64,000 bases of DNA, from NCBI GenBank assembly GCA_002269645.1, contig NIVC01000293.1, forward strand, positions 186,001 through 250,000. The letters run 5' to 3'. The translations under genes were made by a program, and so were the position numbers. Shown here in pieces: positions 9,709 through 37,117 of the stretch; the stretch's first letter is position 1; every line of letters begins with the position of its first letter. Under the pieces are notes generated by a model. That model did not search any database. It was not told the DNA's origin and worked only from the letters and a program-made list of their open reading frames with translations. Source of the DNA: Macrostomum lignano. Its lineage: Eukaryota.

Positions 9709-10084
9709 CCTCTACAGTAACCTTCCTTGCTCACCAAAGAAGGTTGCAATGCATTTGAAAATTTATTAACCTCAATATAAAATCATGGGATTTAGCTCAC
9801 TCTATATCTTTCTGTCTATGTGTAACCCTGAAACTCAAAAAAATCAAAATAGACTTTGTAAATCAAACACACAGATAGCTGTCCATTAAGCGTTCCCCAG
9901 GGGCTTAAAGGGCTTGACTTTTTCACCATTCTGTAGTTGGGCATTTCCGCATTAACCACTCACTACAACTAAGTAATTTTAGACTCAATTATATATATAG
10001 CTAGACATAGTCTTGATCTGTAGCTTGAATCGGTTCTCAAAGACAGTCTAACCTGGCAGATTTTACAGGTCTCTCTAAACAGAC

Positions 10085-13321: not shown

Positions 13322-14707
13322 TCAAGCGGTCTCAGTAACGGCCTGAGCAGCAGCAACTAGATCAGCCTCCTTCTTGGTTTCCTGATGATGCTGACAGCAG
13401 GCCATCTTCAGCTTGCCTTTTATACCACGGACCAGATCCTCCTCCTCAGTGGTGGTCTCGTGCGCGTGCTGCACCAGCATCTCGTTGCCGCGGGTGACGC
13501 CCCAGTTGTCCGGCTTGCTCATGGCGGACGAGTACGGCCGACCGCTGGCCGGGTTGAGGTTCTCCCAGTACTCGCGGTTGGCCCGGGCTCGAACCCACGG
13601 CTTCGTGTGCATCTTGAGGCCGCCGCCCCAGACAACGTGCTTCTCAGAGCCGGCTGGGAATCGCCCCCGCTCGGCGGCGAGCTCCTCTGCGACGGCGCGG
13701 ATGTGGTAGGGCTCGAAGCCGCAGCAGCCGCCGATGAAGCGGACGCCAAGGTCGTAGGCCTCCCTGGCGTAGCGGTGCATGTCCCAGCGGTTGCAGATCC
13801 TACTCTCCAGAGCGAATGGGAACTCGGGCAGGTCGATGAAGCCCTGCTTCCCAGCATCCGGAGTCATGTAGGCCAACGGCTGGCACATCAGGTAGGCCTT
13901 GAGATTCTCGCGTTCCAGAGCTTCTTTCATCAGCTTGATCGCTTCCAGGCTGACGAACGGATCGTAGTGGCAGTTGACGCCAACGATTTTGGCTCCAGCG
14001 CGAGCCATACGGATGGCGCAGTCGCCCGCGGAGTTGCCGTGCATGTCGCCCTGCGGCCCGATGCACATGCTGCAGGCCACGGGCAGTCCGGTCTCCAGCC
14101 CGACCTCAATGGCCCACTCCGCCTCTTCGACGTGCTCAAAGTACTCACACAGAATGAAGTCGACACCTTCGTCTTTGAAAGCGCCCATCTGGCCTCGGAA
14201 AATCTCCTTGGTGTCCTCCTTGCTGGCGCCGCTCAGGTAAGTCGGGGTCTGGCAGACACCGCCGAGGAACAGGGCACCGCCCTCCTGGGCCACCTCGCGG
14301 GCCACCCGACAAGCGGCAGCGTTGATGTTTGTGCACTGGCAAAATTAAAAATGAAATTTCGGTATTCCAACGCTCACGAGAGGATTGCTGAGATGCCAAG
14401 GTTCAAGTGGGATGCTGGTGTCTTCTGCACTTACCCCGTACTTCTGCGATGCAGTGTTGCCCCGATTAGAAAGCTTGTCATCGCTGGCGTAGAAGGTGAA
14501 CGCCTGCATCACATCAGAGCCGGCTCTGAGAAACTCGCGATGAAGCTGACGCACAGCTTCCGGATGCTCGACAACCGCTTCCGGTGTCCACGGCCCCGCT
14601 TTGACGTAGCCGCGCTTCTCCAGGGCGAACACGAAGCCGCCGTCTCCGATGACAACCTCGCCGTTGTCAAGCCGCTCCATAATGCCGCGTCGCTCGATGG
14701 TGCCCAT
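13322..14707 (-). CDS. BHMT: Betaine-homocysteine S-methyltransferase, copy 1 (428 aa). Exons 14435..14707 and 13322..14335
   Basis: Motifs [46 protein letters not shown] and [11 protein letters not shown] (Zn-binding Cys triad), WENL.PASGRP. One 99-nt GT-AG phase-0 intron. Confidence 0.97.
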
Positions 14708-14815: not shown

Positions 14816-14823
14816 TATTTATA
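14816..14823 (-). promoter_or_regulatory. TATA box (TATAAATA) upstream of BHMT copy 1
   Basis: Exact TATAAATA on the minus strand about 110 bp upstream of the ATG. An equivalent element precedes the other two BHMT starts. Confidence 0.6.
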
Positions 14824-15211: not shown

Positions 15212-15705
15212 TTAATGTACGTTGAAATAGGCTACGCCCTTATCAGCATTTTCTTGTCTCTCGAACAGTAATTTAGTTTATTTGTCAACAAAGATAGTTA
15301 AACCTGGTTAGAACCAGTTAAAGCCACTTGTGTTCTCGCAATTACGAAACTTTTGCTAAGTTGGAATTTTCCTTAAAACATAAAATATCATTTTCATTCA
15401 ACTGGAAAATGTACCGAGGTTAGAAAATTCCGCTTCAATTGCTTTCTTCTATAGGAATTTTCTGCAGCCTTCATCTGAGCCTGTCCTGCAGCCAAGAGCC
15501 AAGAGGTCAAGATGCTTAATTGTTCGAAGATTAACAAATCTTTAGCTTGTGCGACTAAGGCTGGAAGATTAACATCTTCTTGGCCTGCATCTGTCAGGTG
15601 AGCATATTGAGAATTGTGAATTTCGATTTTATGCCTCTCTTTTAAAGTTTGTGTCATAAATTTGTAGTTAGGGTAGTGTGCAGCAGTGTGTTTCAGAGCC
15701 ACTCA

Positions 15706-16455
15706 TCACGGTGACCCCGTGATGGTGATCCGTCACGTTGACTCCCTCGCGGTGACTCAATCACAGTGGTTTTATCACGGGGACTCCCATCATGTTGACT
15801 CAATCACGGTGAGTCTATGATGTTGACCCATTCACGGTGACTCCATCACGGTGACTCCATCACGATGACTCCATCACGGTGACTCCATCACGATGACTCC
15901 ATCACGGTGACTCCATCACGGTGACTCCATCACGGTGACTCCATCACGGTGACTCCATCACGGTGACTCCATCACGGTGACTCCATCACGGTGACTCCAT
16001 CGCGGTGACTCCATCACGGTGACTCCATCACGGTGACTCCATCACGGTAACTCAATCAGGGTGACTTAATCACGGTGATTCCATCACGGGGACTCCCATC
16101 ACGTTGACTCAATCATGGTGATTCCATCACGGGGACTTCCGTCACGTTGACCCATTCACGGTGACTCCATCACCTTGACTCAATCACGGTGACTCATTCA
16201 CGGTGACTCCATCACCTTGACTCAATCACGGTGACTCATTCACGGTGACTCCATCACCTTGACTCAATCACGGTGACTCATTCACGGTGACTCCATCACC
16301 TTGACTCAATCACGGTGACTCAATCTCGGTGTTTCAATCACAGTGACTCAAAGATGTTGACCCATCACGGTGACTTCATCACGGTGACTCCATCACGGTG
16401 ACTTCATCACGGTGACTTCCATCACGGCGACTCCATCATTTTGACCCAATCACGG
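15706..16455. repeat. 14-bp minisatellite (CCATCACGGTGACT)
   Basis: Homogeneous core with degenerate flanks. Confidence 0.95.
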
Positions 16456-16739
16456 CACCTCAGCACTACTACATGAACCTGTAGTTTGAGATGAGAACCA
16501 TACACAATTCATTGAAATTTCTTTGCCTATCAATTTTAAGAACAGAAATTGAAAATGATTACAGGTGAAATATTCTTTTCAAAAGGTGAATTAGGTAAAC
16601 AGAGACGCCACCTCATTCTGTTTGGCGCCTTCCATTTCAGCCTGTTTACAATGCATTGAGTCATTCGGTGCCCCTTGAGTCATTTGGCGCTTTTAGGGGT
16701 TGGCGTCCCCAATGAATCCGCCATTTGGCGCCCCCCATC

Positions 16740-17845
16740 GAATATATTTGGCGCCGATATTACGTCTATTTGGCGCCCCATTGAATCAATTTGGTGCTCC
16801 CATTGAATCTATTTGACGCCCCCATTGAGTCAATTTGGCGCCCCCATTGAATCTATTTGGCGCCCCCATTGAGTCAATTTGGCGCCCCCATTGAATCTAT
16901 TTGGCGCCCCCATTGAGTCAATTTGGCGCCCCTATTGGATCTATTTGACACCCCATTGGATCAATCTGGTGCCCCTATTCTATTTGACGCCCCCATTGGA
17001 TCTATTTGGCGCCCCCATTGGATCTATTTGGCGCCCCTATTGGATCTATTTGGCGCCCCTATTGGATCTATTTGGCGCCCCTATTGGATCTATTTGGCGC
17101 CCCCATTGAGTCAATTTGGCGCCCCTATTGGATCTATTTGGCGCCCCCATTGGATCTATTTGGCGCCCCCATTGGATCTATTTGGCGCCCCTATTGGATC
17201 TACTTGGCGCCCCCATTGGATCTATTTGGCGCCCCCATTGGATCTATTTGGCGCCCCCATTGAGTCAATTTGGCGCCCCTATTGGATCTGTTTATTGGCG
17301 CCCCTATTGGATCTATTTGGCGCCCCTATTGGATCTGTTTATTGGCGCCCCTATTGGATCTATTTGGCGCCCCTATTGGATCTACTTGGCGCCCCCATTG
17401 GATCTATTTGGCGCCACCATTTGATCTATTTGGCGCCCCCATTGGATCTATTTGGCGCCCCTATTGAATTTATTTGGCGCCCCTATTGGATCTATTTGGC
17501 GCCCCTATTGGATCTTTTTGGCGCCCCTATCGGATCTATTTGGCGCCCCTATTGGATCTATTTGGCGCCCCTATTGGATCTATTTGGCGCCCCTATTGGA
17601 TCTTTTTGGCGCCCCTATTGGATCTGTTTATTGGCGCCCCTATTGGATCTATTTGGCGCCCCTATCGGATCTATTTGGCGCCCCCATTGGATCTATTTGG
17701 CGCCCCTATTGGATCTATTTGACGCCCCCATTGGATCTATTTGGCGCCCCTATTGGATCAATTTGGCGCCCCTATTGGATCAATTTGGTGCCCCTATTGG
17801 ATCTATTTTGGCGCCCCCATTGAATCAATTTGGCGCCCCCATTAA
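16740..17845. repeat. 22-bp minisatellite (ATTTGGCGCCCC[C/T]ATTGGATCT)
   Basis: Visible period of about 22 bp. Accounts for the ORFs at 16879-17885. Confidence 0.96.
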
Positions 17846-18323
17846 ATCTATTTTAAGCGCGCAAATTTCGGTTATTGCATGCTGATTCAGGTCTGAACTT
17901 CACATAAACATAAACTTGGTCACCGTCACAATCTTGAATATGCTTGAAATTATAAAAGCGATATTTTTCCAGGCACATATGTTAGTGTTTACACCCAGCT
18001 GTGCAACAGGCTGTGCGTGTGCGTCTGTTGACAAAGCCCGCGCATGAGCTGCGCTTGTTATGAACTTTTCGGGTGCAATCCGTATTTTCCCTTGTTTCTA
18101 TTTTTAAGTTCTAATAGAAAAATGGCATATACTGTTTTCTCAAGTATGGTTAGTCTCACTTTCCTAGAGTGACTCACATTTAACCTTGGCGAGCAACTTC
18201 ATTTAAACAAGATTTAATAACTTTGCCATCACGGCTATAATTTTTGTTTTGGTTCTATCAAGTTCTGTCCAGTTTGTTCAAGTTTACTTGAACCGAAATG
18301 ACTGAATGAGTAAACACACGGAA

Positions 18324-18341
18324 AACCGGTTTAAACCGGTT
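18324..18341. promoter_or_regulatory. 18-bp palindrome AACCGGTTTAAACCGGTT (double Grainyhead-like site) upstream of DMGDH
   Basis: Identical to the palindrome at 35342-35359. Confidence 0.5.
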
Positions 18342-18679
18342 CTTCTGCTGTCTGCCGCAGCCAACTCTTGCCCCCGTCTAGTGGGCTGCTGACTTGTACA
18401 GGTTTGAGATTAGTCAGAGTGGCCTTGAAGTTCTGGGGGGTGTGAACGCGCAGGTCATGTGATCTGTCGTTTTTTGCTTTCTTCAGAATACTACTGTGTA
18501 ATCTAGGTAAAAGTAGTATAGTGCTTGAAATCCAAATATTTTAAGCTATTTTTTATTTCTTCTCTTAGTTTCTCCTGTAGCTCAATTTGGCATACCTACT
18601 CAAGGCTGCAAGTGTTGAGTAAAAAATTTGTGTTGAGTAGTGTTAAGTAAAAATAATAAGTGTAAAATTTATAGCCTGT

Positions 18680-19530
18680 GCTCAGTCTCAGTCATAGATT
18701 GTTTACAGTCTCAGTCATAGACTGTGTACAGTCTCAGTCATAGATTGTGTACAGTCTCAGTCATAGACTGTGTACAGTCTCAGTCATAGATTGTGTACAG
18801 TCTGAGTCATAGATTGTGTACAGTCTCAGTCATAGATTGTGTACATTCTCAGTCATAGATTGTGTACATTCTCAGTCATAGATTGTGTACATTCTCAGTC
18901 ATAGATTGTGTACATTCTCAGTCATAGATTGTGTACATTCTCAGTCATAGATTGTGTACAACAGTCTCAGTCATAGATTGTGTACAACACTCTCAGTCAT
19001 AGATTGTGTACAACAGTCTCAGTCATAGATTTTGTACATTCTCAGTCATAGATTGTGTACAACAGTCTCAGTCATAGATTGTGTACATTCTCAGTCATGG
19101 ATTGTGTACAACAGTCTCAGTCATAGATTGTGTACATTCTGAGTCATAGATTGTTTACAGTCTCAGTCATAGATTTTGTACATTCTGAGTCATAGATTGT
19201 TTACAGTCTCAGTCATAGATTGTGTACATTCTGAGTCATAGATTGTTTACAGTCTCAGTCATAGATTGTGTACATTCTCAGTCATAGATTGTGTACAACA
19301 GTCTCAGTCATAGATTGTGTACAACACTCTCAGTCATAGATTGTGTACAACAGTCTCAGTCATAGATTTTGTACATTCTCAGTCATAGATTGTGTACATT
19401 CTCAGTCATAGATTGTGTACATTCTCAGTCATAGATTGTGTACAACAGTCTCAGTCATAGATTGTGTACAACAGTCTCAGTCATAGATTGATTGTGTACA
19501 ACAGTCTCATTCATAGATTGTGTACAATCT
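18680..19530. repeat. 23/26-bp minisatellite (CAGTCTCAGTCATAGATTGTGTA)
   Basis: Visible tandem array upstream of the DMGDH coding start, possibly inside a 5'-UTR intron. Confidence 0.96.
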
Positions 19531-19588
19531 CAGCAGCCCATTCAGACGTATTGCAATTGAAACACCCATAAAAGAACCAACTCCCATA

Positions 19589-19740
19589 GTCAGGTCCGCA
19601 GTTCACCCTGTGTGAGCGTGTGTGTATGAGTGCGTACCTGCGTACAGTACTGATGCTTGTCTGTGATCAGGAGTCATAGCGGAATGTACAGAATTGCAGT
19701 CAGCACTGGTCGTGGGACGATGTCACGGCAGGGTGTAAAG
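19589..19740 (+). mobile_element. Diverged 3' fragment of the SINE family seen at 24126 and 62966
   Basis: Shares CAGG(T/G)CCGC..CAC.C.TGTGTGAG, GGAGTC..GCGGAATG and CAGGGTG blocks in the same order, aligned by eye only. Confidence 0.4.
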
Positions 19741-19748
19741 AATATTTA

Positions 19749-22700
19749 ATGGAAATGTTCATTCTCAGTAGTGTCAAAAGCATCAGTTGTTCTACATTAT
19801 CCTACCCTCGCAGGGCTGTCTCGTCTTCCACAGAGCAGCAGCGCCAGCATCCTCTGTCCAAGCGATCGAGCAATGAAGCCGAAGTTGTAATCATTGGCGG
19901 TGGCATTGTGGGCGTCAGCACTGCTTACCATTTGGCTAAGGCCGGAGTTAAGGATGTTGTTCTGTTGGAGAAATCTGAACTTACCGCCGGTTCTACTTGG
20001 CACGCTGTGAGTAGCGTGTTTAGCGTATCGTCGATAAAATTGCTGACAAAATGTTAAATAAAATATTGAATTTTTGTTACTTTTATCTCTGTGAATTATT
20101 TTACTTCAAAAAACGACAGTTATGTTGATTTTATCTCGCAGTTAAGTGTTCCATTCCTTTGTAACAGTTCAGTGCCATTCCTTTGTAACAGTTCAGTGCC
20201 ATTCCTGTGTAACAGTTCAGTGCCATTCCTGTGTAACAGTTCAGTGCCATTCCTGTGTAACAGTTCAGTGCCATTCCTGTCTGACAGTTCAGTGCCATTC
20301 CTGTGTAACAGTTCAGTGCCATTCCTGTGTAACAGTTCAATGCCATTCCTGTGTAACAGTTCAGTGCCATTCCTGTGTAACAGTACAGTGCCATTCCTGT
20401 CTGACAGTTCAGTGCCATTCCTGTGTAACAGTTCAGTGCCATTCCTGTGTAACAGTTCAGTGCCATTTCTGTGTAACAGTTCAGTGCCATTCCTTTGTAA
20501 CAGTTCATTGCCATTCCTGTGTAACAGTTCAGTGCCATTCCTGTGTAACAGTTCAGTGCCATTCCTGTGTAACAGTTCAGTGCCATTCCTGTGTAACAGT
20601 TCAGTGCCATTCCTGTCTGACAGTTCAGTGCCATTCCTGTGTAACAGTTCAGTGCCATTCCTGTCTGACAGTTCAGTGCCATTCCTGTGTAACAGTTCAG
20701 TGCCATTCCTGTGTAACAGTTCAGTGCTATTCCTGTGTAACAGTTCAGTGACATTCCTGTCTAACAGTTCAGTGCCATTCCTTTGTAACAGTTCAGTGCC
20801 ATTCCTGTGTAACAGTTCAGTGCCATTCCTTTGTAACAGTTCAGTGCCATTCCTGTGTAACAGTTCAGTGCCATTCCTTTGTAACAGTTCAGTGCCATTC
20901 CTTTGTAACAGTTCAGTGCCATTTCTGTGTAACAGTTCAGTGCCATTCCTTTGTAACAGTTCAGTGCCATTCCTGTGTAACAGTTCAGTGCCATTCCTTT
21001 GTAACAGTTCAGTGCCATTCCTGTGTAACAGTTCAGTGCCATTCCTGTGTAACAGTTCAGTGCCATTCCTGTGTAACAGTTCAGTGACATTCCTGTCTAA
21101 CAGTTCAGTGCCATTCCTGTGTAACAGTTCAGTGCCATTTCTGTGTAACAGTTCAGTGCCATTCCTGTGTAACAGTTCAGTGCCATTCCTGTGTAACAGT
21201 TCAGTGCCATTCCTGTGTAACAGTTCAGTGCCATTCCTGTGTAACAGTTCAGTGACATTCCTGTCTGACAGTTCAGTGCCATTCCTGTGTAACAGTTCAG
21301 TGCCATTCCTGTGTAACAGTTCAGTGCCATTCCTGTGTAACAGTTCAGTGCCATTCCTGTGTAACAGTTCAGTGCCATTCCTGTCTGACAGTTCAGTGCC
21401 ATTCCTGTCTGACAGTTCAGTGCCATTCCTGTGTAACAGTTCAGTGCCATTCCTGTCTGACAGTTCAGTGCCATTCCTGTGTAACAGTTCAGTGCCATTC
21501 CTGTCTGACAGTTCAGTGCCATTCCTGTGTAACAGTTCAGTGCCATTCCTGTCTGACAGTTCAGTGCCATTTCTGTGTAACAGTTCAGTGCCATTCCTGT
21601 CTGACAGTTCAGTGCCATTCCTGTCTAACACACAGAAAATGTTCTATAAAAACTGTGTCCCCACACGCAGGCCGGCCTCACCACATTCTTCCACCCGGGC
21701 ATTAACGTGCGCCGCGTCCATTACTACAGCATGCAACTGTACTCTCAGCTCGAGGCGGAGACTGACCAACCAGTGGGTCTGCACACTCCAGGCTCCCTGC
21801 GCCTCATCACTACACCGACTCGCATGGACGAGGCCCGATATCAGATGTCCAGGGCAGCCTGGTGCCAAGCCGAACAGCACCTAGTTGGACCGGAGAAATG
21901 CTTGGAATTGTGTCCACTGCTCAACATGAGCACAGTGCTGGGTGGGATCTACAACCCTGGAGATGGTCACATCGATCCCTACTCGGTCACAATGGCGCTA
22001 GCCGCCGGGGCGCGTAAGTATGGCGCCGAGCTGTACCAGAACAGCCAGGTACGCGCCACAAGTCAGGACTCAAAAGGTATCTGGACAATAGTGACTGATC
22101 ACGGCGAACTCAAATCCAAGCATCTGGTCAACGCGGCTGGATTTCACGCTCGTGACGTTGGAAAACTGTCGGGATTGGACCTGCCAATCATTCCGGTGCA
22201 TCATCAGTACGTCATCACCAAAGCTGTGCCTGAGGTGGTCGAACTGAAGCGAGAGCTTCCTGTACTGCGTGACTTGGAAGCCTCCTACTATCTTCGCCAG
22301 GAGAAGCAGGGCCTCTTAGTTGGGCCGTACGAGTCTGCGGAGAACATGATGCTCTGCACTGACTGGTACGATAACGGGGTGCCGGACTCGTTCGGTAGGG
22401 AGCTGTTTGAGCCGGACCTTGGCCGAATCATGCCTCACCTGGAGCGCGCCATGGAGATGGTGCCGGCGATGCAGAACGCCGAGATTCAATCCGTCATATC
22501 CGGGCCGATCACCTACAATGCGGAGAATGCCGGACTGATTGGCCCGGTGGAGGGGCCGCTGAATTATTGGTTGCTAGGCGGCCTTGGTTACGGCATAATC
22601 CACGGTGGCGGCGTTGGCAAATACGTGGCGGACTGGATTCGTACTGGCGAACCGCCGTACGATTTGATTGAGCTGGACGCTAACAGGTATGGCAGAGTTT

Positions 22701-25700
22701 GGGGTCGGCAATTGCATGTTTAGACTGGGGAAACTGTGTGTTGAGATTGGGCAACCGTATCTTTGGAGTGTGGGTCAACCGTGTGTTTAAATTGGGCAAC
22801 CGTGTCTTTGGAGTGTGGGTCAACCGTGTGTTTAAATTGGGCAACCGTGTCTTTGAATTTTGGGTCAACCGTGTCTTTGAATTTTGGGTCAACCGTGTCT
22901 TTGGACTGGGGCAACCGTGTCTTTGGACTGGGGCAATCGTGTGTTTAGAATGGGGCAATCGTGTGTTTAGACTGGGGAACCGTGTCTTTGGAGTGTGGGT
23001 CAACCGTGTCTTTGGAGTGGGGCAACCGTGTGTTTAAATTGGGCAACCGTATCTTTGGAGTAGGGCAACCGTATCTTTGGATTTTGGGTCAACCGTGTCT
23101 TTAGACTGGGAAACCGTGTGTTTAGACTGGGAAACCGTGTGTTTAGACTGGGGAACCATGTGTTTAGACTGGGAAACCGTGTGTTTAGATTGGGGCAACC
23201 GTTTCTTTGGAGTGGGACAATTTAAAAGTCAGGGCCGCTATACGTACACCTTGTGTGACCGCTTACCTTTATACGCATCCGTGTGCGTGCTCCGGGATGA
23301 GCGGATCGATCGTCGAGCTGCTTGACTTTTCGCTTTTGCCCCAAAGCGAGCCAACTACCCATCCGACAGGTACGGCTGGTGGGCCGACCGGAGCTACACG
23401 CACGCGAAGAGCCGCGAGACCTACGGGCTGAATAACGCTGTCGGCTATCCCAAGGAGGAGCGATTCGCCGGCAGGCCAACGAAACGCGCTGCTCAGACCA
23501 GCGCCCTGTACGACGAGTTGAAATCGGCCGGTGCCGAGTTTGGCTTTCACAACGGCTGGGAGCAGCCGCACTGGTTCGGCTTGACCGAGGAGGAGCGACG
23601 CTACGAGCCTTCTTTCCGACGAGGGAACTGGTTCCCAGCGATGCAGCGGGAATGCGAAGGAGTGCTGAACCGGGCTGGCGTTATGGATATTACGCCATTT
23701 TCAAAGTTCGAGATTTCTGGTATGTGGCGTTAGGGTTTGAACTAGTGACACTCTGAATCTGCTAATGTGTCACTCTGAATCTGCCAATGTGTCACTCTGA
23801 ATCTGCCAATGTGTCACTCTGAATCAGCCAATGTGTCACTCTGAATCTGCCAATGTGTCACTCTGAATCAGCCAATGTGTCACTCTGAATCAGCCAATGT
23901 GTCACTCTGAATCTGCCAATGTGTCACTTTGAATCAGCCAATGTGTCACTCTGAATCAGCCAATGTGTCACTCTGAATCAGCCAATGTGTCACTCTGAAT
24001 CAGCCAATGTGTGACTCTGAATCAGCCAATGCGTCACTCTGCATCTGTCAATGTGTCACTCTGAATCAGCCAATGTGTCACTCTAAATCTATCATTGTCA
24101 CTCTGAATGTCTGAATGTCACTCGTTAGATGCAGGAGGCCGTGTGCACCCTGGCGCACCTTAAGCGACATTGTCACACAACCGGCCAGAGACATTGCTGC
24201 CCGTTTCGCCGACTCCCCTAAGCAGACACACAAGCGCGCGGATACGTACGCAGTCATACGCACAGGCACACACTCACACAGGAGTTTACAGCGGCCCTTT
24301 TATCGTTAGGCATGTACACTTCACCGTGCCTTGGGGGTTGGCCCTCAAAGGCGTTAATTGCACGAGCAGAGCCAAGCCGAGATTCCAATTCAGCCCTAAA
24401 TTAATTTGACTGCACTTGGAATCGAGCCTGGGCCGCTGGCACATCAGAGCGCCACGCTGGACCACTGGGCTCCGGCCTCAGTTCTGAATCTGACAGTTGT
24501 CCAATGGCCAGTCATTAGAATCCATAACCATAATCCAAGAAATATTGTTTTTCACTGGGTTTTCTCATTGCATTCAAAATATCAAGGTTTCCAAGCAGAA
24601 TGCATCCAACAAGACCAACCCTCAAAAATTCTCAACAAGGCCCTCGAGCCGGAGAATTCCTGGACCTGGTGACTGCAAACCGACTGCCCAAAGTGAACCG
24701 CACCTGCATCACGCACATGCTCACGCCAAGGGGCCGAGTGTTCTCTGAGATGACTCTGACTTGCTTGCCAGCCGATGATGGCCAACAGAAGTTCCGGGCC
24801 CTGACCGGTTCCGGCTCTGAGATGCACGACCTCATCTGGCTGAAGGACTGGCGACACAAACTCCGCTTCCAGGACGGCGTCAAGATCGACAACGTCACGG
24901 ATTCGATCGGCTGCCTGTCTGTAGCCGGTCCGCTGTCCCGTGAAATTCTTCAGTCGTTGACCTCGGAGAGCCTCGATGCGGGGTCTTATCCGTTTCTGCA
25001 GGCTAAGCAGCTGCAAATTGATGGAGTTGACTGCTTGGCCATCAGAATATCCTACACAGGAGAGCTGGGCTGGGAGCTCTACTGCGGGATCGGAGAGCTG
25101 CCCAGGCTGTACAAATCCATCTGGCGGTCTGGACAGCCGCTCGGTCTGGTGAACTTCGGCTCGTACGCGATGAACTCGCTCCGGCTGGAGAAAGGGTTCG
25201 CCATGTGGGGAGCCGAGATGAACTGCGACACTGGCCCATTGGAGGCTGGCCTCGGCGGCTTCATCAGGCTGGGAAAGTCTGCAGATTTTGTTGGGAAAGC
25301 TGCCGTGGCGGAGGCGAAGCTGAAACTGCAACAGGATGGAGCCCGCCAGTTGAGGATGCTGCGAGTTGACAGTGTTGACGTGGATCCTGAAGGCAACGAA
25401 TCCGTCTGGTTGGACGGCAAGGTGAGCAAACCGTACCTGGTTTTACTTATTTCATAGATTATCGAACAGTTTATAGTAAAATATGAAAGCGAGTTAACCT
25501 ACTCGCTTATAAAATTATTTTATAAAATCAAATAAAATCAAAATCATTATCCCTAAACAAACAAACAAGTATAATAGTTACAAAGAGATAAAAAGTAGGG
25601 TTTCCTGGGATGCTCAGAATCGTACGTTCGTTTGATGTGGCAATGATACAGTGGCATTGTTATTAACAGAGTACAGTGGTCTATTGTTCCATAGCTAACT

Positions 25701-27218
25701 AATTTCCGGGCATTAATCAAATCATTTAATTGATTGGTTGGAACAGAGCAACTAAACAAACTGCTATTGTACCAGTATTCCATTCTTCATGCGGTACAAT
25801 GCAGAATTCCCTAAGCTAGTCTATTCTTCCTACTTTAGTAAAGATTATTAAAAGCTGCTCCAATTCATCTGACTTCCTCATAGAGACATTAATCTTGTAT
25901 TTGCATCATATATACCGGTAGATTTGTACTTTAGTGTACGGTAATATAGAGATATATATATATAATCGTTCAACCTTAGCAAAGGCCTTGATACATGAAT
26001 GATGTGTAACTTTTACATGTACGTTTAAATCGTGAAACTTTTTGTGCAAAACTTTGAGTTTAAATCTCACCAAATCTCTATTATTCTGCCTAAATCAACC
26101 TAAATCTAGATTCATCTACCTAAATCTAGATTCATCTACCTAAATCTAGATTCATCTACCTAAATCTAGATTCATCTACCTAAATCTAGATTCATCTATC
26201 TAAATCTCGATTCATCTACCTAAATCTGGATTCATCTACCTAAATCTAGATTCATCTACCTAAAGCTAGATTCATCTACCTAAATCTAGACCTATCTACC
26301 TGAATTTAGATTCATCTAACTAAATCTAGATTCATCTACCTAAATCTAGATTCATCTACCTAAATCTAGATTCATCTACCTAAATCTAGATTCATCTACC
26401 TAAATCTGGATTCATCTACCTAAATCTAGATTCATCTACCTAAATCTAGACCTATCTACCTGAATTTAGATTCATATAACTAAATCTAGATTCATCTACC
26501 TAAATCTAGATTCATCTACCTAAATCTAGACCTATCTACCTGAATCTAGATTCATCTAACTAAATCTAGATTCATCTACCTAAATCTAGACCCATTAACC
26601 TAAATCTAGACCCATCAACCTAAATCTAGACCCTTCAAACTAAATCTAGACCCATCAACCTAAATCTAGACCCATCAAACTAAATCTAGATTCATCTACC
26701 TAAATCTAGACCCATTAACCTAAATCTAGACCCATCAACCTAAATCTAGACCCTTCAAACTAAATCTAGACCCATCAAACTAAATCTAGACCCATCAAAC
26801 TAAATCTAGACCCATCAAACTAAATCTAGACCCATCAAACTAAATCTAGACCCATCAAACTAAATCTAGACCCATCAAACTAAATCTAGACCCATCAAAC
26901 TAAATCTAGACCCTTCAAACTAAATCTAGACCCATCAAACTAAATCTAGATATATCTACCTAAACCTTCGCAATAAACCACCACTCAAACCCCTAAAAGG
27001 TGGTCGGCAACACGACATCCGGTAGCTACAGTTTCAGCCGCGGTCACGGACTCGCCTTTGCATACGTGCCCGCCAGCCTGGGCGCCAGCACCCAGCTGGA
27101 GGTGGATCTTCTCGGTCGTCGCGTCCCGGCAGTGGTGCTGTCGAAACCACCGTTGCTGCCGGAGCAGGCGAGAAAGAAGACACCCGAAGTGGCATCCGTT
27201 GGTTCGGGTCAGCAATGA
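19749..27218 (+). CDS. DMGDH: Dimethylglycine dehydrogenase, mitochondrial. Exons 19749 (or ATG 19755)..20006, 21671..22686, 23370..23719, 24640..25421, 27000..27218
   Basis: FAD motif [10 protein letters not shown]; STWHA|[12 protein letters not shown] is DMGDH-type (covalent-FAD His) rather than SARDH-type; DGHIDPYS; [16 protein letters not shown]; GcvT-like [12 protein letters not shown] and SLRLEKG. All four introns are GT-AG with matching phases. Ser/Arg-rich N-terminus resembles a mitochondrial presequence. Confidence 0.96.
20149..21630. repeat. 24-bp minisatellite (CAGTTCAGTGCCATTCCTGTGTAA) in DMGDH intron 1
   Basis: Visible 24-bp period. Accounts for the SSVPFLCN / HRNGTELL ORFs. Confidence 0.98.
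22705..23215. repeat. Degenerate ~20-21-bp minisatellite (GGGCAACCGTGTCTTTGGAGT) in DMGDH intron 2
   Basis: Repeated CAACCGTGT core at about 20-bp spacing. Confidence 0.9.
23745..24120. repeat. 22-bp minisatellite (AATGTGTCACTCTGAATC[A/T]GCC) in DMGDH intron 3
   Basis: Visible tandem copies. Confidence 0.95.
24126..24479 (-). mobile_element. tRNA-derived SINE (full length, about 350 bp)
   Basis: Minus strand begins GGCCGGAGCCCAGTGGTCCAGC (A box) and has GGCTCGATTCC (B box). The body aligns along its length with the plus-strand copy at 62966..63327. Confidence 0.8.
26095..26965. repeat. 20-bp minisatellite (TAAATCTAGATTCATCTACC / TAAATCTAGACCCATCAAAC) in DMGDH intron 4
   Basis: Visible 20-bp period with two variant blocks. 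Confidence 0.96.
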
Positions 27219-28619: not shown

Positions 28620-31600
28620 CTATTTCTTCCTCATCTGCTGGCCCAGCTGCTTGACTCGATTGTCTTCTTCTTCGGTGGTCTCGTGCGCGTGCTGCACCAG
28701 CATCTCGCTGCCGCGGGTGACGCCCCAGTTGTCCGGCCTGCTCATGGCGGCCGAGTATGGCCGACCGCTGGCCGGGTTCAGGTTCTCCCAGTAGTCCCGG
28801 CCAGACCGGGCTCGAATCCACGGTTTAGTGCTCATCTTCATGCCGCCGCCCCAGGCGATGTGCTTCTCGGAGCCGGCTGGGAATCGGCCTCTCTCGGCGG
28901 CGAGCTCCTCAGCGATGGCGCGGATGTGATAGGCCTCGAAGCCGCAGCAGCCGCCAATGTAGCGGACGCCAAGGTCGTAGGCAGCCCTGCCAGATTTAAA
29001 ATATACAGATTTTACTACTTATTATACTACTGCTGATTCTAATATAGACTTGCGAAATCGCTTCTGTTGCACTGCATGCTGGTTAAAACAATTGACAATT
29101 TTAATTCAACAATTCGAAGCTTCAAAAAGTATGAATTAGACTAATGGTGAATTGATTAGACTAATGGTGAATTGATTCGACTAATGGTGAATTGATTAGA
29201 CTAATGGTGAATTGATTAGACTAATGGTGAATTGATTAGACTAATGGTGAATTGATTAGACTAATGGTGAATTGATTAGACTAATGGTGAATTGATTAGA
29301 CTAATGGTAAATTGATTAGACTAATGGTGAATTGATTAGACTAATGGTGAATTGATTAGACTATTGGGGCATGGATTAGACTTTTAAAGCATGGATTAGA
29401 CTAATAAGGCATGGATTAGACTAATAAGGCATGGATTAGACTTTTAAAGCATGGATTAGACTAATAAGGCATGGATTAGACTAATAAGGCATGGATTAGA
29501 CTAATAAGGCATGGATTAGACTAATAAGGCATGGATTAGACTAATAAGGCATGGATTAGACTAATAAGGCATGGATTAGACTAATAAGGCATGGATTAGA
29601 CTAATAAGGCATGGATTAGACTAATAAGGCATGGATTAGACTAATAAGGCATGGATTAGACTAATAAGGCATGGATTAGACTAATAAGGCATGGATTAGA
29701 CTAATAAGGCATGGATTAGACTAATAAGGCATGGATTAGACTAATAAGGCATGGATTAGACTAATAAGGCATGGATTAGACTAATAAGGCATGGATTAGA
29801 CTAATAAGGCATGGATTAGACTAATAAGGCATGGATTAGACTAATAAGGCATGGATTAGACTAATAAGGCATGGATTAGACTAATAAGGCATGGATTAGA
29901 CTAACAAGGCATGGATTAGACTAATAAGGCATGGATTAGACTAATAAAGCATGGATTAGACTAATAAAGCATGTATTAGACTAATAAAGCATGGATTAGA
30001 CTAATAAGGCATGGATTAGACTAATAAGGCATGAATTAGACTAATAAGGCATGGATTAGACTAATAAGGCATGGATTAGACCAAAGGACAATAAATGTAG
30101 ATTCAACCTGTCTCACCTAGCGAAGCGGTGCATGTCCCAGCGGGTGCACAATCGACTCTCCATGGCCAAAGGAAACTCGGGCAGGTCGATGCAGCCCTGC
30201 TTCTCAGCATCCGGAGTCATATAGGCCACGGGCTGGCACATCAGGTAGGCCTTGAGATTCTCGCGCTCCAAACCAGCCTTCATCAGCTTGATCGCTTCCA
30301 GGGTGACAAACGGATCGAAGTGGCAGTTGACGCCCACGAGTTTCGCACCAGCGCGAGCCATACGGACGGCGCAGTCGCCCGCGGAGTTGCCGTGCATGTC
30401 GCCTTGCGGTCCGATGCACATCGTGCAGGCCACGGGCAGCCCGGTCTCCAGCCCGACCTGCGGCGGGGGGGCGTTGTTGGTTGGCTAGATTAGCAATCCA
30501 TTATCACGTACTTTAATTTCCTGATTTGGCTAGATTAGCAATCCATCATCGTGTACTTTAATTTCCTGATTTGGCTAGATTAGCAATCCATCATCGTGTA
30601 CTTTAATTTCCTGATTTGGCTAGATTAGCAATCCATCATCGTGTACTTTAATTTCCTGATTTGCCTAGATTAGCAATCCATCGTGTACTTTTATTCCTTA
30701 TTTGGCTAAATTAGCTATATATCGTGTACTTTTATTTTCTGATTTGGCTAGATTAGCAATCCATCATCGTGTACTTTAATTTCCTGATTTGGCTAGATTA
30801 GCAATCCATCATCGTGTACTTTTATTCTCTGATTTGGCTAGATTAGCAATCCATCGTGTACTTTTATTTCTTATTTGGCTAAATTAGCTATATATCGTGT
30901 ACTTTTATTTCTTATTTGGCTAAATTAGCTATATATCGTGTACTTTTATTTTCTGATTTGGCTAGATTAGCAATCCAATACAGCCTGCAATTTTATTAAT
31001 AATTTGGATCAGTTTGTGGATAATTTGAAAATGCTAGTCCATGGTCGAAACCAATGCCAAAAATGAGGTCTGTTCGAACTGTTTCGATCATAGACTAACA
31101 TATTCTTCGCAATTTTTTTAACACCGAGTAGAGTATCTTACCTCAATGGCCCACTCTGCCTCCTCAACATGCTCAAAGTACTCGCACAGCACCAAGTCGG
31201 CTCCTTCGGCCTTGAAAGTCTGCATCTGGCCACGGAAGATGGCCTGGATTGAAGCTTTGTCACCGCCGCTCAGGTAGGTCGGAGTCTGGCACACTCCGCC
31301 TAGAAACAGGGCGTCACCTTCTTGAGCGACCTCACGAGCAATGCGACACGCGGCGGTGTTGATGGCGGTGCACTGAAATTCAAGGGGGGTTGACTATATA
31401 TTAGCAATCCATTCTATGGGTTTGATAGATTAGCAATCCATTCTATGGGTTTGATAGATTAGCAATCCATTCTATAGGTTTGGCTATAGATTAGCAATCC
31501 ATTCTATAGGTTTGCTAGATTAGCAATCCATTCTATAGGTTTGATAGATTAGCAATCCATTTTATAGGTTTGATAGATTAGCAATCCATTCTATAGGTTT

Positions 31601-32340
31601 GATAGATTAGCAATCCATTCTATAGGTTTGCTAGATTAGCAATCCATTCTATGGGTTTGATAGATTAGCAATCCATTCTATGGGTTTGATAGATTAGCAA
31701 TCCATTCTATGGGTTTGATAGATTAGCAATCCATTCTATAGGTTTGATAGATTAGCAATCCATTCTATAGGTTTGATAGATTAGCAATCCATTTGGGTCA
31801 CTTGGGTCACTTAATATAAGAAGGATCATACAGAATTTTCAGCGTTGTGAAATTTCGATCTTATGAATCCCCTCCCATCCATTTTATTAATATGAACGCC
31901 AGTTTGAGCTAAATTACTAACGATCTGAAAAAAGTTTTACAAACAGTTTAGTAGAAAGAGTCGAATCAAAAAGTGTGAGGCGAAATCAAAGAGCTGTTTT
32001 TGTATCTCTCCAGATGAAGCGTTAAAGCAGATTGCTCAAGCGTTCTCATGTGCTCAAACTCTAAGTCTCACCCCATACTTTTCCTGAGCCGTGTTGCCTC
32101 TATTGGAAAGCTTGTCCTCGCTGGCATAGTAAGTGAACGCCTGCATCACATCAGAGCCGGCTCTGAGAAACTCGCGATGAAGCTGCTTTACAGCTTCCGG
32201 GTATTCGACCACCGCTTCCGGTGTCCACGGCCCCGCCTTGACGTAGCCGCGCTTCTCCAGGGCGAACACGAAGCCGCCGTCTCCAATGACAACCTCGCCG
32301 TTGTCAAGCCGCTCCAGAATGCCGCCTCTTTTGTTTGACA

Positions 32341-32341
<1 letters not shown>
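28620..32341 (-). CDS. BHMT: Betaine-homocysteine S-methyltransferase, copy 2 (402 aa). Exons 32072..32341, 31142..31372, 30117..30457, 28620..28986
   Basis: Spliced ORF is uninterrupted with GT-AG introns of phase 0, 0 and 2. [28 protein letters not shown] and GGCCGF motifs are intact. Confidence 0.95.
29140..30082. repeat. 20-bp minisatellite, two sub-arrays (ATTGATTAGACTAATGGTGA then ATGGATTAGACTAATAAGGC), in BHMT2 intron 3
   Basis: Visible 20-bp period. Confidence 0.97.
30480..30975. repeat. ~45-bp minisatellite (TTGGCTAGATTAGCAATCCATCATCGTGTACTTTAATTTCCTGAT) in BHMT2 intron 2
   Basis: Visible tandem copies of 40-45 bp. Confidence 0.93.
31400..31793. repeat. 29-bp minisatellite (GATAGATTAGCAATCCATTCTATAGGTTT) in BHMT2 intron 1
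   Basis: Visible tandem copies sharing AGATTAGCAATCCAT with the intron 2 array. Confidence 0.95.
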
Positions 32342-32342
<1 letters not shown>

Positions 32343-32422
<80 letters not shown>

Positions 32423-32435
32423 GTCTGTCTGTCTG
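32343..32435. repeat. (TGTC)n microsatellite abutting the BHMT2 start codon
   Basis: Tetranucleotide run directly 5' of ATG 32341 on the minus strand. Confidence 0.97.
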
Positions 32436-32462
32436 CTGATTTTCTGCACTACCAGTCGCAGC

Positions 32463-32515
32463 TATATATACCCATAGCTACTCCGTCAAAATGAAAACCA
32501 GTTCCAGCTGGTTTT
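32463..32515 (-). promoter_or_regulatory. TATA-like box (TATATATA, 32463-32470) plus inverted AAAACCAG...CTGGTTTT Grainyhead-like sites upstream of BHMT2
   Basis: Same order of elements as upstream of the other two BHMT starts. Confidence 0.45.
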
Positions 32516-33127
32516 ACAATCAAACTTATCGATTCGAAACTTTTTCTTAAGTTGACCCAAGAAGTCTGAGCATTGGAAAAGATTCGAGATTTCTGAGAGC
32601 AGCTTATCGTGAAACCTAGTAAACATGGCTTCCTACCCTCGTCAAACCCGCAATTCAGGTTCCACATTTCTCTAGTCCAAGGAGTTCCGAAATTTTGCAT
32701 CGGAATCAAATTAACTTTTTCATAGAAAATAAAACAACTCTTTGTTTTAATAAGCTGTATTCAAACTCACTGTCTCTTTACATCGCGAGATTTTAAATTA
32801 ATCAATCGAATTTTCAAATCTATTTCTGTAGATTAACATTCCAGATCTGTTAGTTAACGCAGTCCTTGTTCAGCTTTAGTCTAGATTGTAAAACAATTTT
32901 GAGACTTGGTCATTATCTGCGAGTAAGCTGCTAGGGGGTAAACTAGGGGGGGGGGTACGTATTAAACACCTGAGGAATTCTCACGCAGTTCCTCAGCTCA
33001 CGCTTTCGATACGTTGCGCCACGAAACTCGCTTTGGCTCAGTTTGGGGCGTTCACAGACAATTTCTGTGTTTGTGTTATATGAATTGAGGGCAGATTTAA
33101 TGATACAGTAGTTTATAACACTGCTTT

Positions 33128-34828
33128 CTGGGTGCTGAGGTCACTGGGTGCTGAGGACACTGGGTGCTGAGGACACTGGGTGCTGAGGACACTGGGTGCT
33201 GAAGACACTGGGTGCTGAAGACACTGGGTGCTGAGGACACTGGGTGCTGAGGACACTGGGTGCTGAAGACACTGGGTGCTGAAGACACTGGGTGCTGAGG
33301 ACACTGGGTGCTGAGGACACTGGGTGCTGAGGACACTGGGTGCTGAGGACACTGGGTGCTGAGGACACTGGGTGCTGAGGACACTGGGTGCTGAAGACAC
33401 TGGGTGCTGAAGACACTGGGTGCTGAGGACACTGGGTGCTGAGGACACTGGGTGCTGAGGACACTGGGTGCTGAGGACACTGGGTGCTGAGGACACTGGG
33501 TGCTGAGGACACTGGGTGCTGAGGACACTGGGTGCTGAGGTCACTGGGTGCTGAGGACACTGGGTGCTGAGGACACTGGGTGCTGAAGTCACTGGGTGCT
33601 GAGGATACTGGGTGCTGAAGTCACTGGGTGCTGAGGACACTGGGTGCTGAAGTCACTGGGTGCTGAGGACACTGGGTGCTGAAGTCACTGGGTGCTGAGG
33701 ACACTGGGTGCTGAGGACACTGGGTGCTGAGGACACTGGGTGCTGAGGACACTGGGTGCTGAGGACACTGGGTGCTGAGGACACTGGGTGCTGAGGACAC
33801 TGGGTGCTGAGGACACTGGGTGCTGAGGACACTGGGTGCTGAGGACACTGGGTGCTGAGGACACTGGGTGCTGAGGACACTGGGTGCTGAGGACACTGGG
33901 TGCTGAGGACACTGGGTGCTGAGGACACTGGGTGCTGAAGTCACTGGGTGCTGAGGACACTGGGTGCTGAAGTCACTGGGTGCTGAGGACACTGGGTGCT
34001 GAAGTCACTGGGTGCTGAGGACACTGGGTGCTGAGGACACTGGGTGCTGAGGACACTGGGTGCTGAGGACACTGGGTGCTGAGGACACTGGGTGCTGAGG
34101 ACACTGGGTGCTGAGGACACTGGGTGCTGAGGACACTGGGTGCTGAGGACACTGGGTGCTGAGGACACTGGGTGCTGAGGACACTGGGTGCTGAGGACAC
34201 TGGGTGCTGAGGACACTGGGTGCTGAAGACACTGGGTGCTGAGGACACTGGGTGCTGAGGACACTGGGTGCTGAGGACACTGGGTGCTGAGGACACTGGG
34301 TGCTGAGGACACTGGGTGCTGAGGACACTGGGTGCTGAGGACACTGGGTGCTGAGGACACTGGGTGCTGAGGACACTGGGTGCTGAGGACACTGGGTGCT
34401 GAGGACACTGGGTGCTGAGGACACTGGGTGCTGAGGACACTGGGTGCTGAGGACACTGGGTGCTGAGGACACTGGGTGCTGAGGACACTGGGTGCTGAGG
34501 ACACTGGGTGCTGAGGTCACTGGCTGCTGAGGACACTGGGTGCTGAGGACACTGGGTGCTGAGGACACTGGGTGCTGAGGTCACTGGCTGCTGAGGTCAC
34601 TGGGTGCTGAGGTCACTGGGTGCTGAGGTCACTGGGTGCTGAGGACACTGGGTGCTGAGGACACTGGGTGCTGAGGACACTGGGTGCTGAGGACACTGGG
34701 TGCTGAGGACACTGGGTGCTGAGGTCACTGGGTGCTGAGGACACTGGGTGCTGAGGTCCCTGGGTGCTGAGGTCACTGGGTGCTGAGGACACTGGGTGCT
34801 GAGGACACTGGGTGCTGAGGTCACTGGT
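33128..34828. repeat. 16-bp minisatellite (GACACTGGGTGCTGAG)
   Basis: More than 100 visible copies. Accounts for the SSAPSVLSTQCPQHPV ORFs. Confidence 0.98.
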
Positions 34829-34930
34829 TGCTAAGGAGCTCCATTTTGAGGATATTCTGCAGCTGAAGGTTTAAGGAGAAAGACAGAAAACCAAAATAAT
34901 TTCAAAAGCCACTATCAGCCACAAACTCAC

Positions 34931-35200
34931 CCCGAATTTCTGCGATGCAGTGTTGCCCCGGTTGGAAAGCTTGTCCTCGCTGGCATAGTAAGTGAACGCC
35001 TGCATCACATCAGAGCCGGCTCTGAGAAACTCGCGATGAAGCTGCTTCACAGCTTCTGGGTACTCGACCACCGCTTCCGGTGTCCACGGCCCCGCCTTGA
35101 CGTAGCCGCGCTTCTCCAGGGCGAACACGAAGCCGCCGTCTCCAATGACAACGTCGCCATTGTCGAGCCGCTCCATAATGCCTCCTCGTTTGTTCGACAT
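34931..35200 (-). CDS. BHMT: Second intact BHMT first exon (90 codons): alternative first exon of BHMT2 or a truncated third copy
   Basis: [23 protein letters not shown]...ASQKFG followed by a GTGAGT donor, phase 0, same length as exon 32072..32341. No BHMT exon 2 lies between it and 32341. Confidence 0.85.
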
Positions 35201-35279
35201 GGTAAATGATGAGGCTGGTGCTGGGACTCTCTGGTGGATTCTGAACTTTTCGAGTGGCGCGGATTGTTTGAAATCGGGC

Positions 35280-35360
35280 TATTTATATCCACTTACAGCC
35301 GAGTTTTGCGCCTGTCTCTCTCTCTCACCCCTCGGTCTCGGAACCGGTTTAAACCGGTTC
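35280..35360 (-). promoter_or_regulatory. TATA box (TATAAATA, 35280-35287) and 20-bp palindrome GAACCGGTTTAAACCGGTTC (35341-35360)
   Basis: Seen directly, 80-160 bp upstream of ATG 35200. Confidence 0.6.
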
Positions 35361-35727
35361 TGTTTAACTATTTTATTGACCGATAAAGTCAAACGCTCCT
35401 GACCTAGATAGTGCCACGTACCACCGACTCAGTTGGCCATGGAGATCTGCAAGAATTGGCAATATATGAGACTGCAACACAGCATCGATTGGTTAAATAA
35501 AGCTTGATTTTCAGCAAACCAATTGCTAGACTCAGACCTCCATGATGACTCTCTCTGGAGACTTTGACATGCCGCTAGACTTGCTGCAATATTTATGTTG
35601 TCAATGGAAAATACCTGGCGAGGTAACTCGCCGCTAAAAATGTAACTCAGGAAATGGAAAATTCTAAAAATTGCAACCGTAAACATAAAGGTCAAATCTT
35701 AGATTCCGTTCTTTAATAAGAAATAAT

Positions 35728-35902
35728 TAGCACCAGGGGCTTTAGCACCAGAGACTTTAGCACTAGGGGCGCCAGCACCAGGGACTTTAGCACCAGGGAC
35801 TTTAGCACCAGGGGCTTTAGCACCAGGAGCGCCAGCACCAAGGACGCCAGCACCAGGGGCGCCAGCACCAGGGGCGCCAGCACCAGGGGCGCCAGCACCA
35901 GG
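35728..35902. repeat. 15-bp minisatellite, third copy of the AGCACCAGGGG family
   Basis: Contains all three unit variants seen at 150..3548. Confidence 0.93.
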
Positions 35903-36423
35903 GTTGCCATTGCTTAGTCCAGCCTATTATGGAAGTCCGCTGCCGGCACTGGAAAAAACAATGAAGAGGAGAGATGAGAGGGCAGAGGAACACGGCTGAG
36001 GGAACGGGAGTGAGGGCTGCAGGACCGAGAAAGATAAAAGAGGGAAAAAGTGCATGAAGAAAGAAAACTTTGCGATAAAAGCGATGCCGGCTGCACCAAT
36101 TTATAGGAAATCAGTTTGGTGAGAATTTCAGGCTATCAAGACAGTCAGCACACAGTATACTTCAAAAAGTACAACACTGGCATCAGAACGGTATAATGAA
36201 AATTTCATTTTTTAGTTCTAGTCTATCAGGTACTCAGCTGTTTTAGCACTCTGCCACAACTGCATTAAAGGGAATGGAATTTTAATGCATTACCTGTGAC
36301 CAAAGTCCAAATTTTTATGTGCTCCTGTGCATGTATGCTCGTATGATGATAACATCTCTCTCAAGCATCTTGACAAATGAGGGACTAGTAAAAGTATATG
36401 GCTTCCACTTCTGCTGGCCATTC

Positions 36424-37117
36424 TGGTGCTGGCGCCCCTTGGTGCTGGCGCCCCTTGGTGCTGGCGCCCCTTGGTGCTGGCGCCCCTTGGTGCTGGCGCC
36501 CCTTGGTGCTGGCGCCCCTTGGTGCTGGCGCCCCTTGGTGCTGGCGCCCCTTGGTGCTGGCGCCCCTTGGTGCTGGCGCCCCTTGGTGCTGGCGCCCCTT
36601 GGTGCTGGCGCCCCTTGGTGCTGGCGCCCCTTGGTGCTGGCGCCCCTTGGTGCTGGCGCCCCTTGGTGCTGGCGCCCCTTGGTGCTGGCGCCCCTTGGTG
36701 CTGGCGCCCCTTGGTGCTGGCGCCCCTTGGTGCTGGCGCCCCTTGGTGCTGGCGCCCCTTGGTGCTGGCGCCCCTTGGTGCTGGCGCCCCTTGGTGCTGG
36801 CGCCCCTTGGTGCTGGCGCCCCTTGGTGCTGGCGCCCCTTGGTGCTGGCGCCCCTTGGTGCTGGCGCCCCTTGGTGCTGGCGCCCCTTGGTGCTGGCGCC
36901 CCTTGGTGCTGGCGCCCCTTGGTGCTGGCGCCCCTTGGTGCTGGCGCCCCTTGGTGCTGGCGCCCCTTGGTGCTGGCGCCCCTTGGTGCTGGCGCCCCTT
37001 GGTGCTGGCGCCCCTTGGTGCTGGCGCCCCTTGGTGCTGGCGCCCCTTGGTGCTGGCGCCCCTTGGTGCTGGCGCCCCTTGGTGCTGGCGCCCCTTGGTG
37101 CTGGCGCCCCTTGGTGT
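36424..37117. repeat. 16-bp minisatellite (GGTGCTGGCGCCCCTT), an inverted one-base-longer variant of the 15-bp family
   Basis: Perfectly homogeneous period 16; its reverse complement is AAGGGGCGCCAGCACC. Confidence 0.98.

Follow-up and report, generated by a model that had tools for sequence, protein, structure and literature searches.

How should a gene be read that has one body and two nearly identical beginnings? The question is raised by a locus of the flatworm Macrostomum lignano, where the exons encoding the body of a betaine–homocysteine S-methyltransferase (BHMT) are preceded by two 270-nt coding first exons, one proximal and one distal. The locus lies in a 64,000-nucleotide stretch of contig NIVC01000293.1 (assembly GCA_002269645.1, Mlig_3_7), hereafter the window, whose positions become record coordinates on the contig by the addition of 186000. 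An earlier note, made from the letters of the window, had explained the arrangement by alternative promoters serving two isoforms of the same enzyme. We consider it probable, though far from certain, that the locus is indeed one BHMT gene whose coding first exon was duplicated in tandem and whose two copies, each behind a TATA-type promoter-like region, are used in a mutually exclusive way. Locus L001, once reverse-complemented, is contained letter for letter in the window, and transcript-level support was taken from deposited gene models and protein entries.

The gene, here called gene A, consists of the following parts:

34931..35200, minus strand: distal first exon, coding part (270 nt, MSNKRGGIM...NTASQKFG, phase 0), the first coding exon of PAA86093.1
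34930..34925, minus strand: distal donor GTGAGT, read from the sequence
32072..32341, minus strand: proximal first exon, coding part (270 nt, MSNKRGGIL...NTAQEKYG, phase 0, donor GTGAGA), the first exon of A0A1I8JSD9
31142..31372, minus strand: shared exon 2 (231 nt, acceptor TTTCAG)
30117..30457, minus strand: shared exon 3 (341 nt)
28620..28986, minus strand: shared exon 4 (367 nt including the TAG stop)

Each first exon has 90 codons and begins with an ATG and the residues MSNKRGGI; the lengths, starts, phase and strong donors given in the earlier note are exact on the minus strand. Both donors fit the M. lignano consensus GT[G/A]AG (PMC8629364). The exons differ at 22 of 270 nt, corresponding to 13 synonymous codon changes and five replacements (from proximal to distal: L9M, E16D, Q86S, E87Q and Y89F), which bears out the description of few amino-acid differences among many synonymous ones. 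Their similarity is far above chance (tblastn E ~1e-57) and ends at the exon borders, with promoters and introns that cannot be aligned. The final 31 nt of the two exons hold 12 differing sites, enough to keep a junction read or contig of one from being mistaken for that of the other. A pyrimidine-tract acceptor is missing upstream of both first exons. The AGs of a (CAGA)n tract in front of the proximal exon are likewise without a pyrimidine tract, yet an ab initio-like model (P0003) takes one of them as its acceptor.

Joined to exons 2–4, either first exon gives a protein of 402 aa, and the predicted product is a clear BHMT orthologue. It matches the homocysteine S-methyltransferase domain PF02574 over the full profile length (E = 3.5e-45, residues 18–309), and rat BHMT (1UMY, E = 1e-176) and human BHMT (1LT7/4M3P, ~1e-174 to 1e-176) over residues 5–393, while similarity to HMT and MetH is only 1e-10 or worse. 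The cysteine motifs GVNCH and GGCCGF and the homocysteine (Hcy)-binding strand are identical to rat BHMT in the alignment, and the DGGFVF strand is intact in both first exons; in BHMT structures, the cysteine motifs bind Zn and DGGFVF belongs to the Hcy-binding strand. The five residues that distinguish the isoforms lie in the N-terminal tail and in a poorly conserved stretch just past the Hcy-binding strand, segments that vary among animal BHMTs.

Both 402-aa isoforms anticipated by the earlier note match public entries exactly. By exact-sequence look-up, the distal exon plus the body equals GenBank PAA86093.1 (BOX15_Mlig026652g1) and UniRef100_A0A1I8G173 residue for residue, and the proximal exon plus the body equals UniProt A0A1I8JSD9 (UniRef100_A0A1I8JSD9). 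The gene range of PAA86093.1 is exactly window 35200..28620, and the deposited model thus begins at the distal ATG and omits the proximal exon; the splicing of the distal exon past the proximal one to 31372, put forward from the sequence, is what this RNA-derived model contains. The GenBank annotation was made from RNA evidence only: RNA-seq mapped with STAR and assembled with StringTie, Trinity transcripts placed by BLAT, and TACO for merging (PMC5730564). Together with the 12 junction-discriminating sites, PAA86093.1 is the strongest available support for the proposed splice model.

For the proximal exon, the join to exon 2 is predicted by one UniProt model only, A0A1I8JSD9. From its accession series, we take this entry to be an earlier ML2 annotation model. 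A further, older ML2 model (P0003) is a fusion: a distal-type exon is followed directly by a proximal-type exon and then by the body, and an AG of the (CAGA)n tract serves as acceptor, so that the 90-residue N-terminus is repeated in tandem and in frame. A gag-protease-like segment in the same model suggests a retroelement insertion. The protein collection (Logan/ENA) had no M. lignano cDNA-like contigs with either junction, and the short ENA sequences of the cluster differ from the M. lignano exons.

Two repeats dominate the DNA between the first exons:

33128..34837, no strand: 16-bp minisatellite (CTGGGTGCTGAGGACA; period 16, 106.9 copies, 96% matches), within the distal-isoform intron
32342..32435, minus strand: (CAGA)n microsatellite (94 nt), which abuts the proximal ATG and would be most of the proximal 5' untranslated region (UTR)

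Going from one exon to the other, 93 nt of unique DNA, the 16-bp array and ~790 nt of unique DNA including the proximal promoter region are crossed. A permissive tblastn search for BHMT coding remnants (exons 2–4) between the first exons (word size 2, E ≤100) gave low-complexity and array noise only, in line with the earlier statement that the interval holds the array and noncoding DNA with no second exon 2. The distal-isoform intron, 3.56 kb long, takes in the proximal exon and its promoter as well as the array. Extended promoter or intron homology was not found among the window's three copies of exon 1 (the third belongs to gene B, a BHMT paralog described below), blastn-short giving chance matches of 8–14 nt only, and without extended flank homology the boundaries of the duplication cannot be defined.

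The arrangement recurs in a second contig, NIVC01000254.1 (L002), which is colinear with the window at 95–100% identity per segment and ~97% overall. The assembly holds 180 Mb of blocks at least 95% identical, owing to the extra large chromosomes of the sequenced DV1 line (PMC5730564). In this sister contig, the distal exon (10001–10270) is followed by a shorter 16-bp array (~1 kb), the proximal exon (12304–12573), exons 2–4, an antisense DMGDH-like gene and a copy of gene B; the counterparts of genes A and B are denoted gene A' and gene B'. Its (CAGA)n tract is about 270 nt long (~12030–12303). In each contig, two homologous first exons precede one shared exon set and are separated by noncoding DNA only. 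All four of these exons are intact, and neither the broken frame or lost ATG or donor nor the neutral substitution of a relic is seen.

A TATA-like box is present at each first exon, as had been claimed, and each is accompanied by a dimeric element:

35280..35287, minus strand: distal TATA-like box TATAAATA(G), at −87 from the distal ATG, identical in the sister contig
35342..35359, minus strand: perfect 18-bp palindrome AACCGGTTTAAACCGGTT in the distal promoter, formed by two AACCGGTT half-sites 10 bp apart
32463..32470, minus strand: proximal TATA-like box TATATATA(G), at −129 from the proximal ATG, with a 7-bp insertion directly after it in the sister contig
32496..32513, minus strand: degenerate dimer AACCAGCTGGAACTGGTT in the proximal promoter, 25 nt upstream of the TATA-like box, with 3 half-site mismatches

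The Grainyhead-like sites that the earlier note had placed at both exons fared unevenly: at the distal exon there are two perfect AACCGGTT sites, but at the proximal exon only the degenerate pair. The likeness of AACCGGTT to the Grainyhead/CP2 consensus says nothing on which factor binds. The palindrome stands 54 nt upstream of the distal TATA-like box and is kept in the sister contig at 9838; the degenerate proximal dimer is kept there as well. Between the contigs, the distal promoter (−300..−1) has three substitutions, and ~230 nt upstream of the proximal TATA-like box are identical. Judged by its sequence, the distal promoter looks the better preserved of the two.

The synonymous changes had been read as a sign that both exons are under selection, an argument that turned out to be confounded by gene conversion. 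We aligned six copies of exon 1 (distal, proximal and gene B from each of the two contigs) and found 44 variable sites. At nt 138/144/153 the copies form a four-gamete pattern, dist_1 and prox_2 having G-A-G and dist_2 and prox_1 having A-G-A (the numbers distinguish the two contigs), and across nt 13–48 dist_2 carries the proximal states while dist_1 has its own. Distal and proximal copies show fixed differences only at nt 6, at nt 25 and at 12 of the final 31 positions. Gene conversion between the distal and proximal copies has thus evidently exchanged the exon cores, which explains why the exons are 92–95% identical though their flanks are unalignable.

With the Nei–Gojobori method, synonymous divergence (dS) between the distal and proximal exons was 0.30 and nonsynonymous divergence (dN) 0.031, but the resulting dN/dS of ~0.10 is not clean evidence for the translation of both copies because sequence can be converted from a working partner. 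Changes unique to the distal lineage give a cleaner signal because they cannot have been copied from the known partners: in a hand count from the six-copy site table, five are synonymous and two are conservative replacements, a small signal with neutral odds of ~1-in-80 by our own binomial estimate. The 3' end of the distal exon mostly resembles gene B, and a gene-B-type protein encoded by a Logan transcript-length contig (P0014), presumably from another Macrostomum, ends in ...SQKFG, which makes the QEKYG end of the proximal exon the derived one.

Gene B and its neighbor lie downstream of gene A in the window:

13322..14707, minus strand: gene B, second BHMT paralog (428 aa, PAA86091.1) with its own exon 1
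14707..14435, minus strand: gene B exon 1, the third exon-1 copy, followed by a 99-nt intron
14335..13322, minus strand: gene B fused exon, equivalent to exons 2–4
14823..14816, minus strand: gene B TATA box TATAAATA, at −116 from the ATG, the TATAAATAG box being common to the distal exon
~15512–27218, plus strand: DMGDH/sarcosine-dehydrogenase-like gene (881 aa; DAO, FAO_M and GCV_T domains)
15302–15319: degenerate AACCGGTT dimer in the spacer between gene B and the DMGDH-like gene
18324–18341: second copy of the palindrome AACCGGTTTAAACCGGTT, inside the DMGDH-like gene

The third exon-1 copy had been left out of the earlier note. Gene B lacks the two 3' introns, as is classically seen when introns are lost by a 3'-biased, cDNA-mediated route. 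The DMGDH-like gene lies between the two BHMT genes and is head-to-head with gene B, the start codons being 804 bp apart, and the arrangement is kept in the sister contig. Because BHMT makes the dimethylglycine that DMGDH uses up, the two BHMT genes and the DMGDH-like gene look like a small betaine-catabolism cluster.

The dimeric element follows the same cluster. The window has five exact AACCGGTT sites where 0.59 would be expected, and every one lies within the BHMT/DMGDH cluster. The search for dimers required two AACCGGTT half-sites with at most three mismatches and left the 2-nt spacer free; it found four in the window against 0.16 expected (in the distal and proximal promoters, the gene B/DMGDH-like spacer and the DMGDH-like gene). 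All four are at BHMT or DMGDH promoter-like positions, both first-exon promoters included, and both perfect palindromes are kept in the sister contig. A search with the perfect 18-mer and up to three mismatches missed the proximal copy, which matches only when the 2-nt spacer is free. The dimeric AACCGGTT element is thus a candidate shared regulatory element of the cluster.

How the locus would work can be set out in a few steps. Transcription from the distal promoter would produce exon 1d, whose GTGAGT donor would pair with the acceptor of exon 2 at 31372, and the array, the proximal promoter and exon 1p would be removed from these transcripts as one intron of 3.56 kb. The proximal promoter would produce exon 1p, preceded by a 5'UTR of (CAGA)n, and its donor would use this acceptor (TTTCAG) as well. 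The two mRNAs would encode 402-aa BHMT enzymes five residues apart, the exon cores being held alike by gene conversion between the copies. As the five residues lie outside the invariant Hcy-binding strand, the consequence of the choice is probably mainly regulatory, through promoter and 5'UTR use, and not catalytic. Of the two units, the distal one looks like the principal, having perfect promoter elements and being the choice of the RNA-based annotation; the firing of both promoters and the in vivo use of the proximal exon are what we infer. The anatomy, its recurrence in two contigs, the identity of both isoforms with database entries and the conversion pattern are observed directly.

Several observations weigh against this reading. 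The proximal isoform is missing from the RNA-based GenBank annotation, which contains only the distal form, and is carried by A0A1I8JSD9 only. Gene conversion, evident between the exons, could make a dead exon look alive. The contigs diverge by 1.4–3% everywhere, the distal exon at 8/270 sites and its flanks at ~8/590, which leaves too little power and yields no independent signal of constraint; excess conservation of the exons is not seen, and conversion has, if anything, made the distal exon diverge more than its flanks. At the proximal exon, the dimer is degenerate, and the TATA flank (with the 7-bp indel) and the (CAGA)n tract that would form the 5'UTR differ between the contigs. All this would suit a locus in which one exon is functional and the other is the relic of a truncated duplicate, its frame, ATG and donor preserved by conversion and its sequence spliced out within intron 1; the RNA-based annotation and the promoter motifs would point to the proximal exon as the likelier relic. 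We regard such a relic as possible but rather unlikely. The ATG, the last 31 nt and the donor are intact in both exons of both contigs, and they lie outside the recently converted core; the lineage-specific changes are mostly synonymous in both copies; the ~230 nt above the proximal TATA-like box are identical between contigs; and the proximal exon is, after all, used in one UniProt model.

A different difficulty comes from the sister contig, where the deposited model pairs the distal exon with gene B' and not with gene A'. PAA86995.1 (10001–31541 of that contig, RNA-derived) joins a distal-type exon 1 in frame to the gene B' body over 21.5 kb, bypassing gene A', which has no model of its own there, and running antisense through the DMGDH-like gene. 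Two explanations offer themselves: splicing of the distal exon to more than one partner, or a mis-linking of exon-1 paralogs by the annotation pipeline. A k-mer assembly chimera across the junction would not be expected, as judged from the lack of a shared 24-nt stretch. Taken at face value, the model would make the distal exon a promoter-bearing coding leader shared by both paralogs, spliced to gene A 3.6 kb away or to gene B 20 kb away; exon-restricted conversion may keep it compatible with both bodies, in a co-regulated cluster marked by the AACCGGTT dimer. We find this improbable. It is a single model in one annotation, and in the window contig gene B is given its own exon 1 (PAA86091.1). 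An unassembled copy of gene B with a distal-type converted exon 1 would give the same model through BLAT mapping, and both the redundancy and the incompleteness of the assembly are documented (PMC5730564). The same repeat-rich, error-prone assembly (PMC5730564) and the uniformity of the 1.7-kb array (96%) could also hide a complete third BHMT body, collapsed within the 16-bp array, so that the distal exon would belong to a gene of its own. We give little credence to such an artefact: the exon–array–exon layout recurs across contigs and assemblies with differing array length, in the order exon, array, promoter, exon in two contigs (arrays of 1.7 and ~1.0 kb) and with adjacent exons in the ML2 model from another assembly, and a third type of M. 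lignano BHMT body was not found in the protein collection. Equally far-fetched, in our view, is a single distal promoter with the proximal isoform made by spliced-leader (SL) trans-splicing at a (CAGA)n AG just upstream of the proximal ATG. About 30–39% of M. lignano genes are SL trans-spliced (PMC5730564, PMC8629364), and many AGs of the tract abut that ATG, but SL acceptors in the species read [T/C]TNCAG (PMC8629364), and the purine-rich (CAGA)n tract has no such YTNCAG context, making it an unlikely source of the proximal isoform. The upstream cis donor of the distal exon would moreover favor cis-splicing, and a conserved TATA box stands 129 nt upstream of the proximal ATG.

With two alternative first exons as the preferred reading, the locus can be set beside known systems. 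In the UGT1A and clustered protocadherin genes, tandem homologous coding first exons each have a promoter and a donor of their own and lack an acceptor; they are joined mutually exclusively to shared exons, and the upstream intron contains the downstream first exons. The M. lignano locus would work in the same way. It has only two first exons, however, whose peptides are nearly the same (5 of 90 residues differ) where those systems encode distinct substrate or recognition domains, and gene conversion homogenizes them. Kondrashov and Koonin in 2001 and Letunic, Copley and Bork in 2002 reportedly described alternative splicing through tandem exon duplication, mostly of internal exons; the duplicates in those surveys are, as here, of the same length and phase, and they are used mutually exclusively, as is proposed here, but their choice is made by splicing, while here it would be made by promoter use. 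The vertebrate BHMT and BHMT2 genes likewise stem from a tandem BHMT duplication, but they are complete, separate genes, whereas here a lone extra first exon has been added to one of two tandem paralogs. In the Drosophila gene hydra, which has nine duplicated alternative first exons, the first exon and its upstream region were duplicated in tandem, as here; hydra is a young, fast-evolving testis gene (PMC1904467), while BHMT is a metabolic enzyme of deep conservation that is subject to strong purifying selection. By its structure, the locus is an ordinary case of alternative first exons arising from tandem duplication, with putative promoter activity and putative use of the proximal exon.

Tandem arrays are not limited to the interval between the first exons. 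The introns of gene A are each mostly minisatellite (29131–30081, 30481–30977 and 31396–31793, with periods of 20, 45/173 and 29 bp, respectively), and the array lengths vary between the two contigs. The 29- and 45-bp arrays have a common GGATTGCTAATCTA-like core, and the 20-bp unit is only loosely related. GC-rich arrays of 15/16 bp (TGGTGCTGGCGCCCCT-like) that are related to one another surround the locus (35727–35903, 36424–37000, 1–2000 and ~5600–5780), and older fused gene models render them as LVLKPLVLK repeats. Colinearity of the contigs is lost in a GC-rich array ~0.5–0.7 kb upstream of the distal ATG, and the distance to a neighboring 202-aa gene is 3.1 or 8.9 kb, depending on the contig.

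No mention of Mlig026652, Mlig024130, Mlig031806 or BHMT in Macrostomum was found in the literature and supplements searched; the case is undescribed there, although both isoforms have already been deposited as gene models. Those models treat the BHMT of M. lignano inconsistently, linking the distal exon to gene A, linking it to gene B' in the sister contig, or fusing both exons in the older model, and the value of the analysis for annotation is that it pinpoints the junctions in need of checking. The general understanding of alternative first exons is unchanged. What the locus adds is a compact case of a duplicated promoter and first-exon cassette on a highly conserved metabolic enzyme, with conversion between the copies visible, in a species tractable to transgenesis, where the two putative promoters are open to direct reporter tests.

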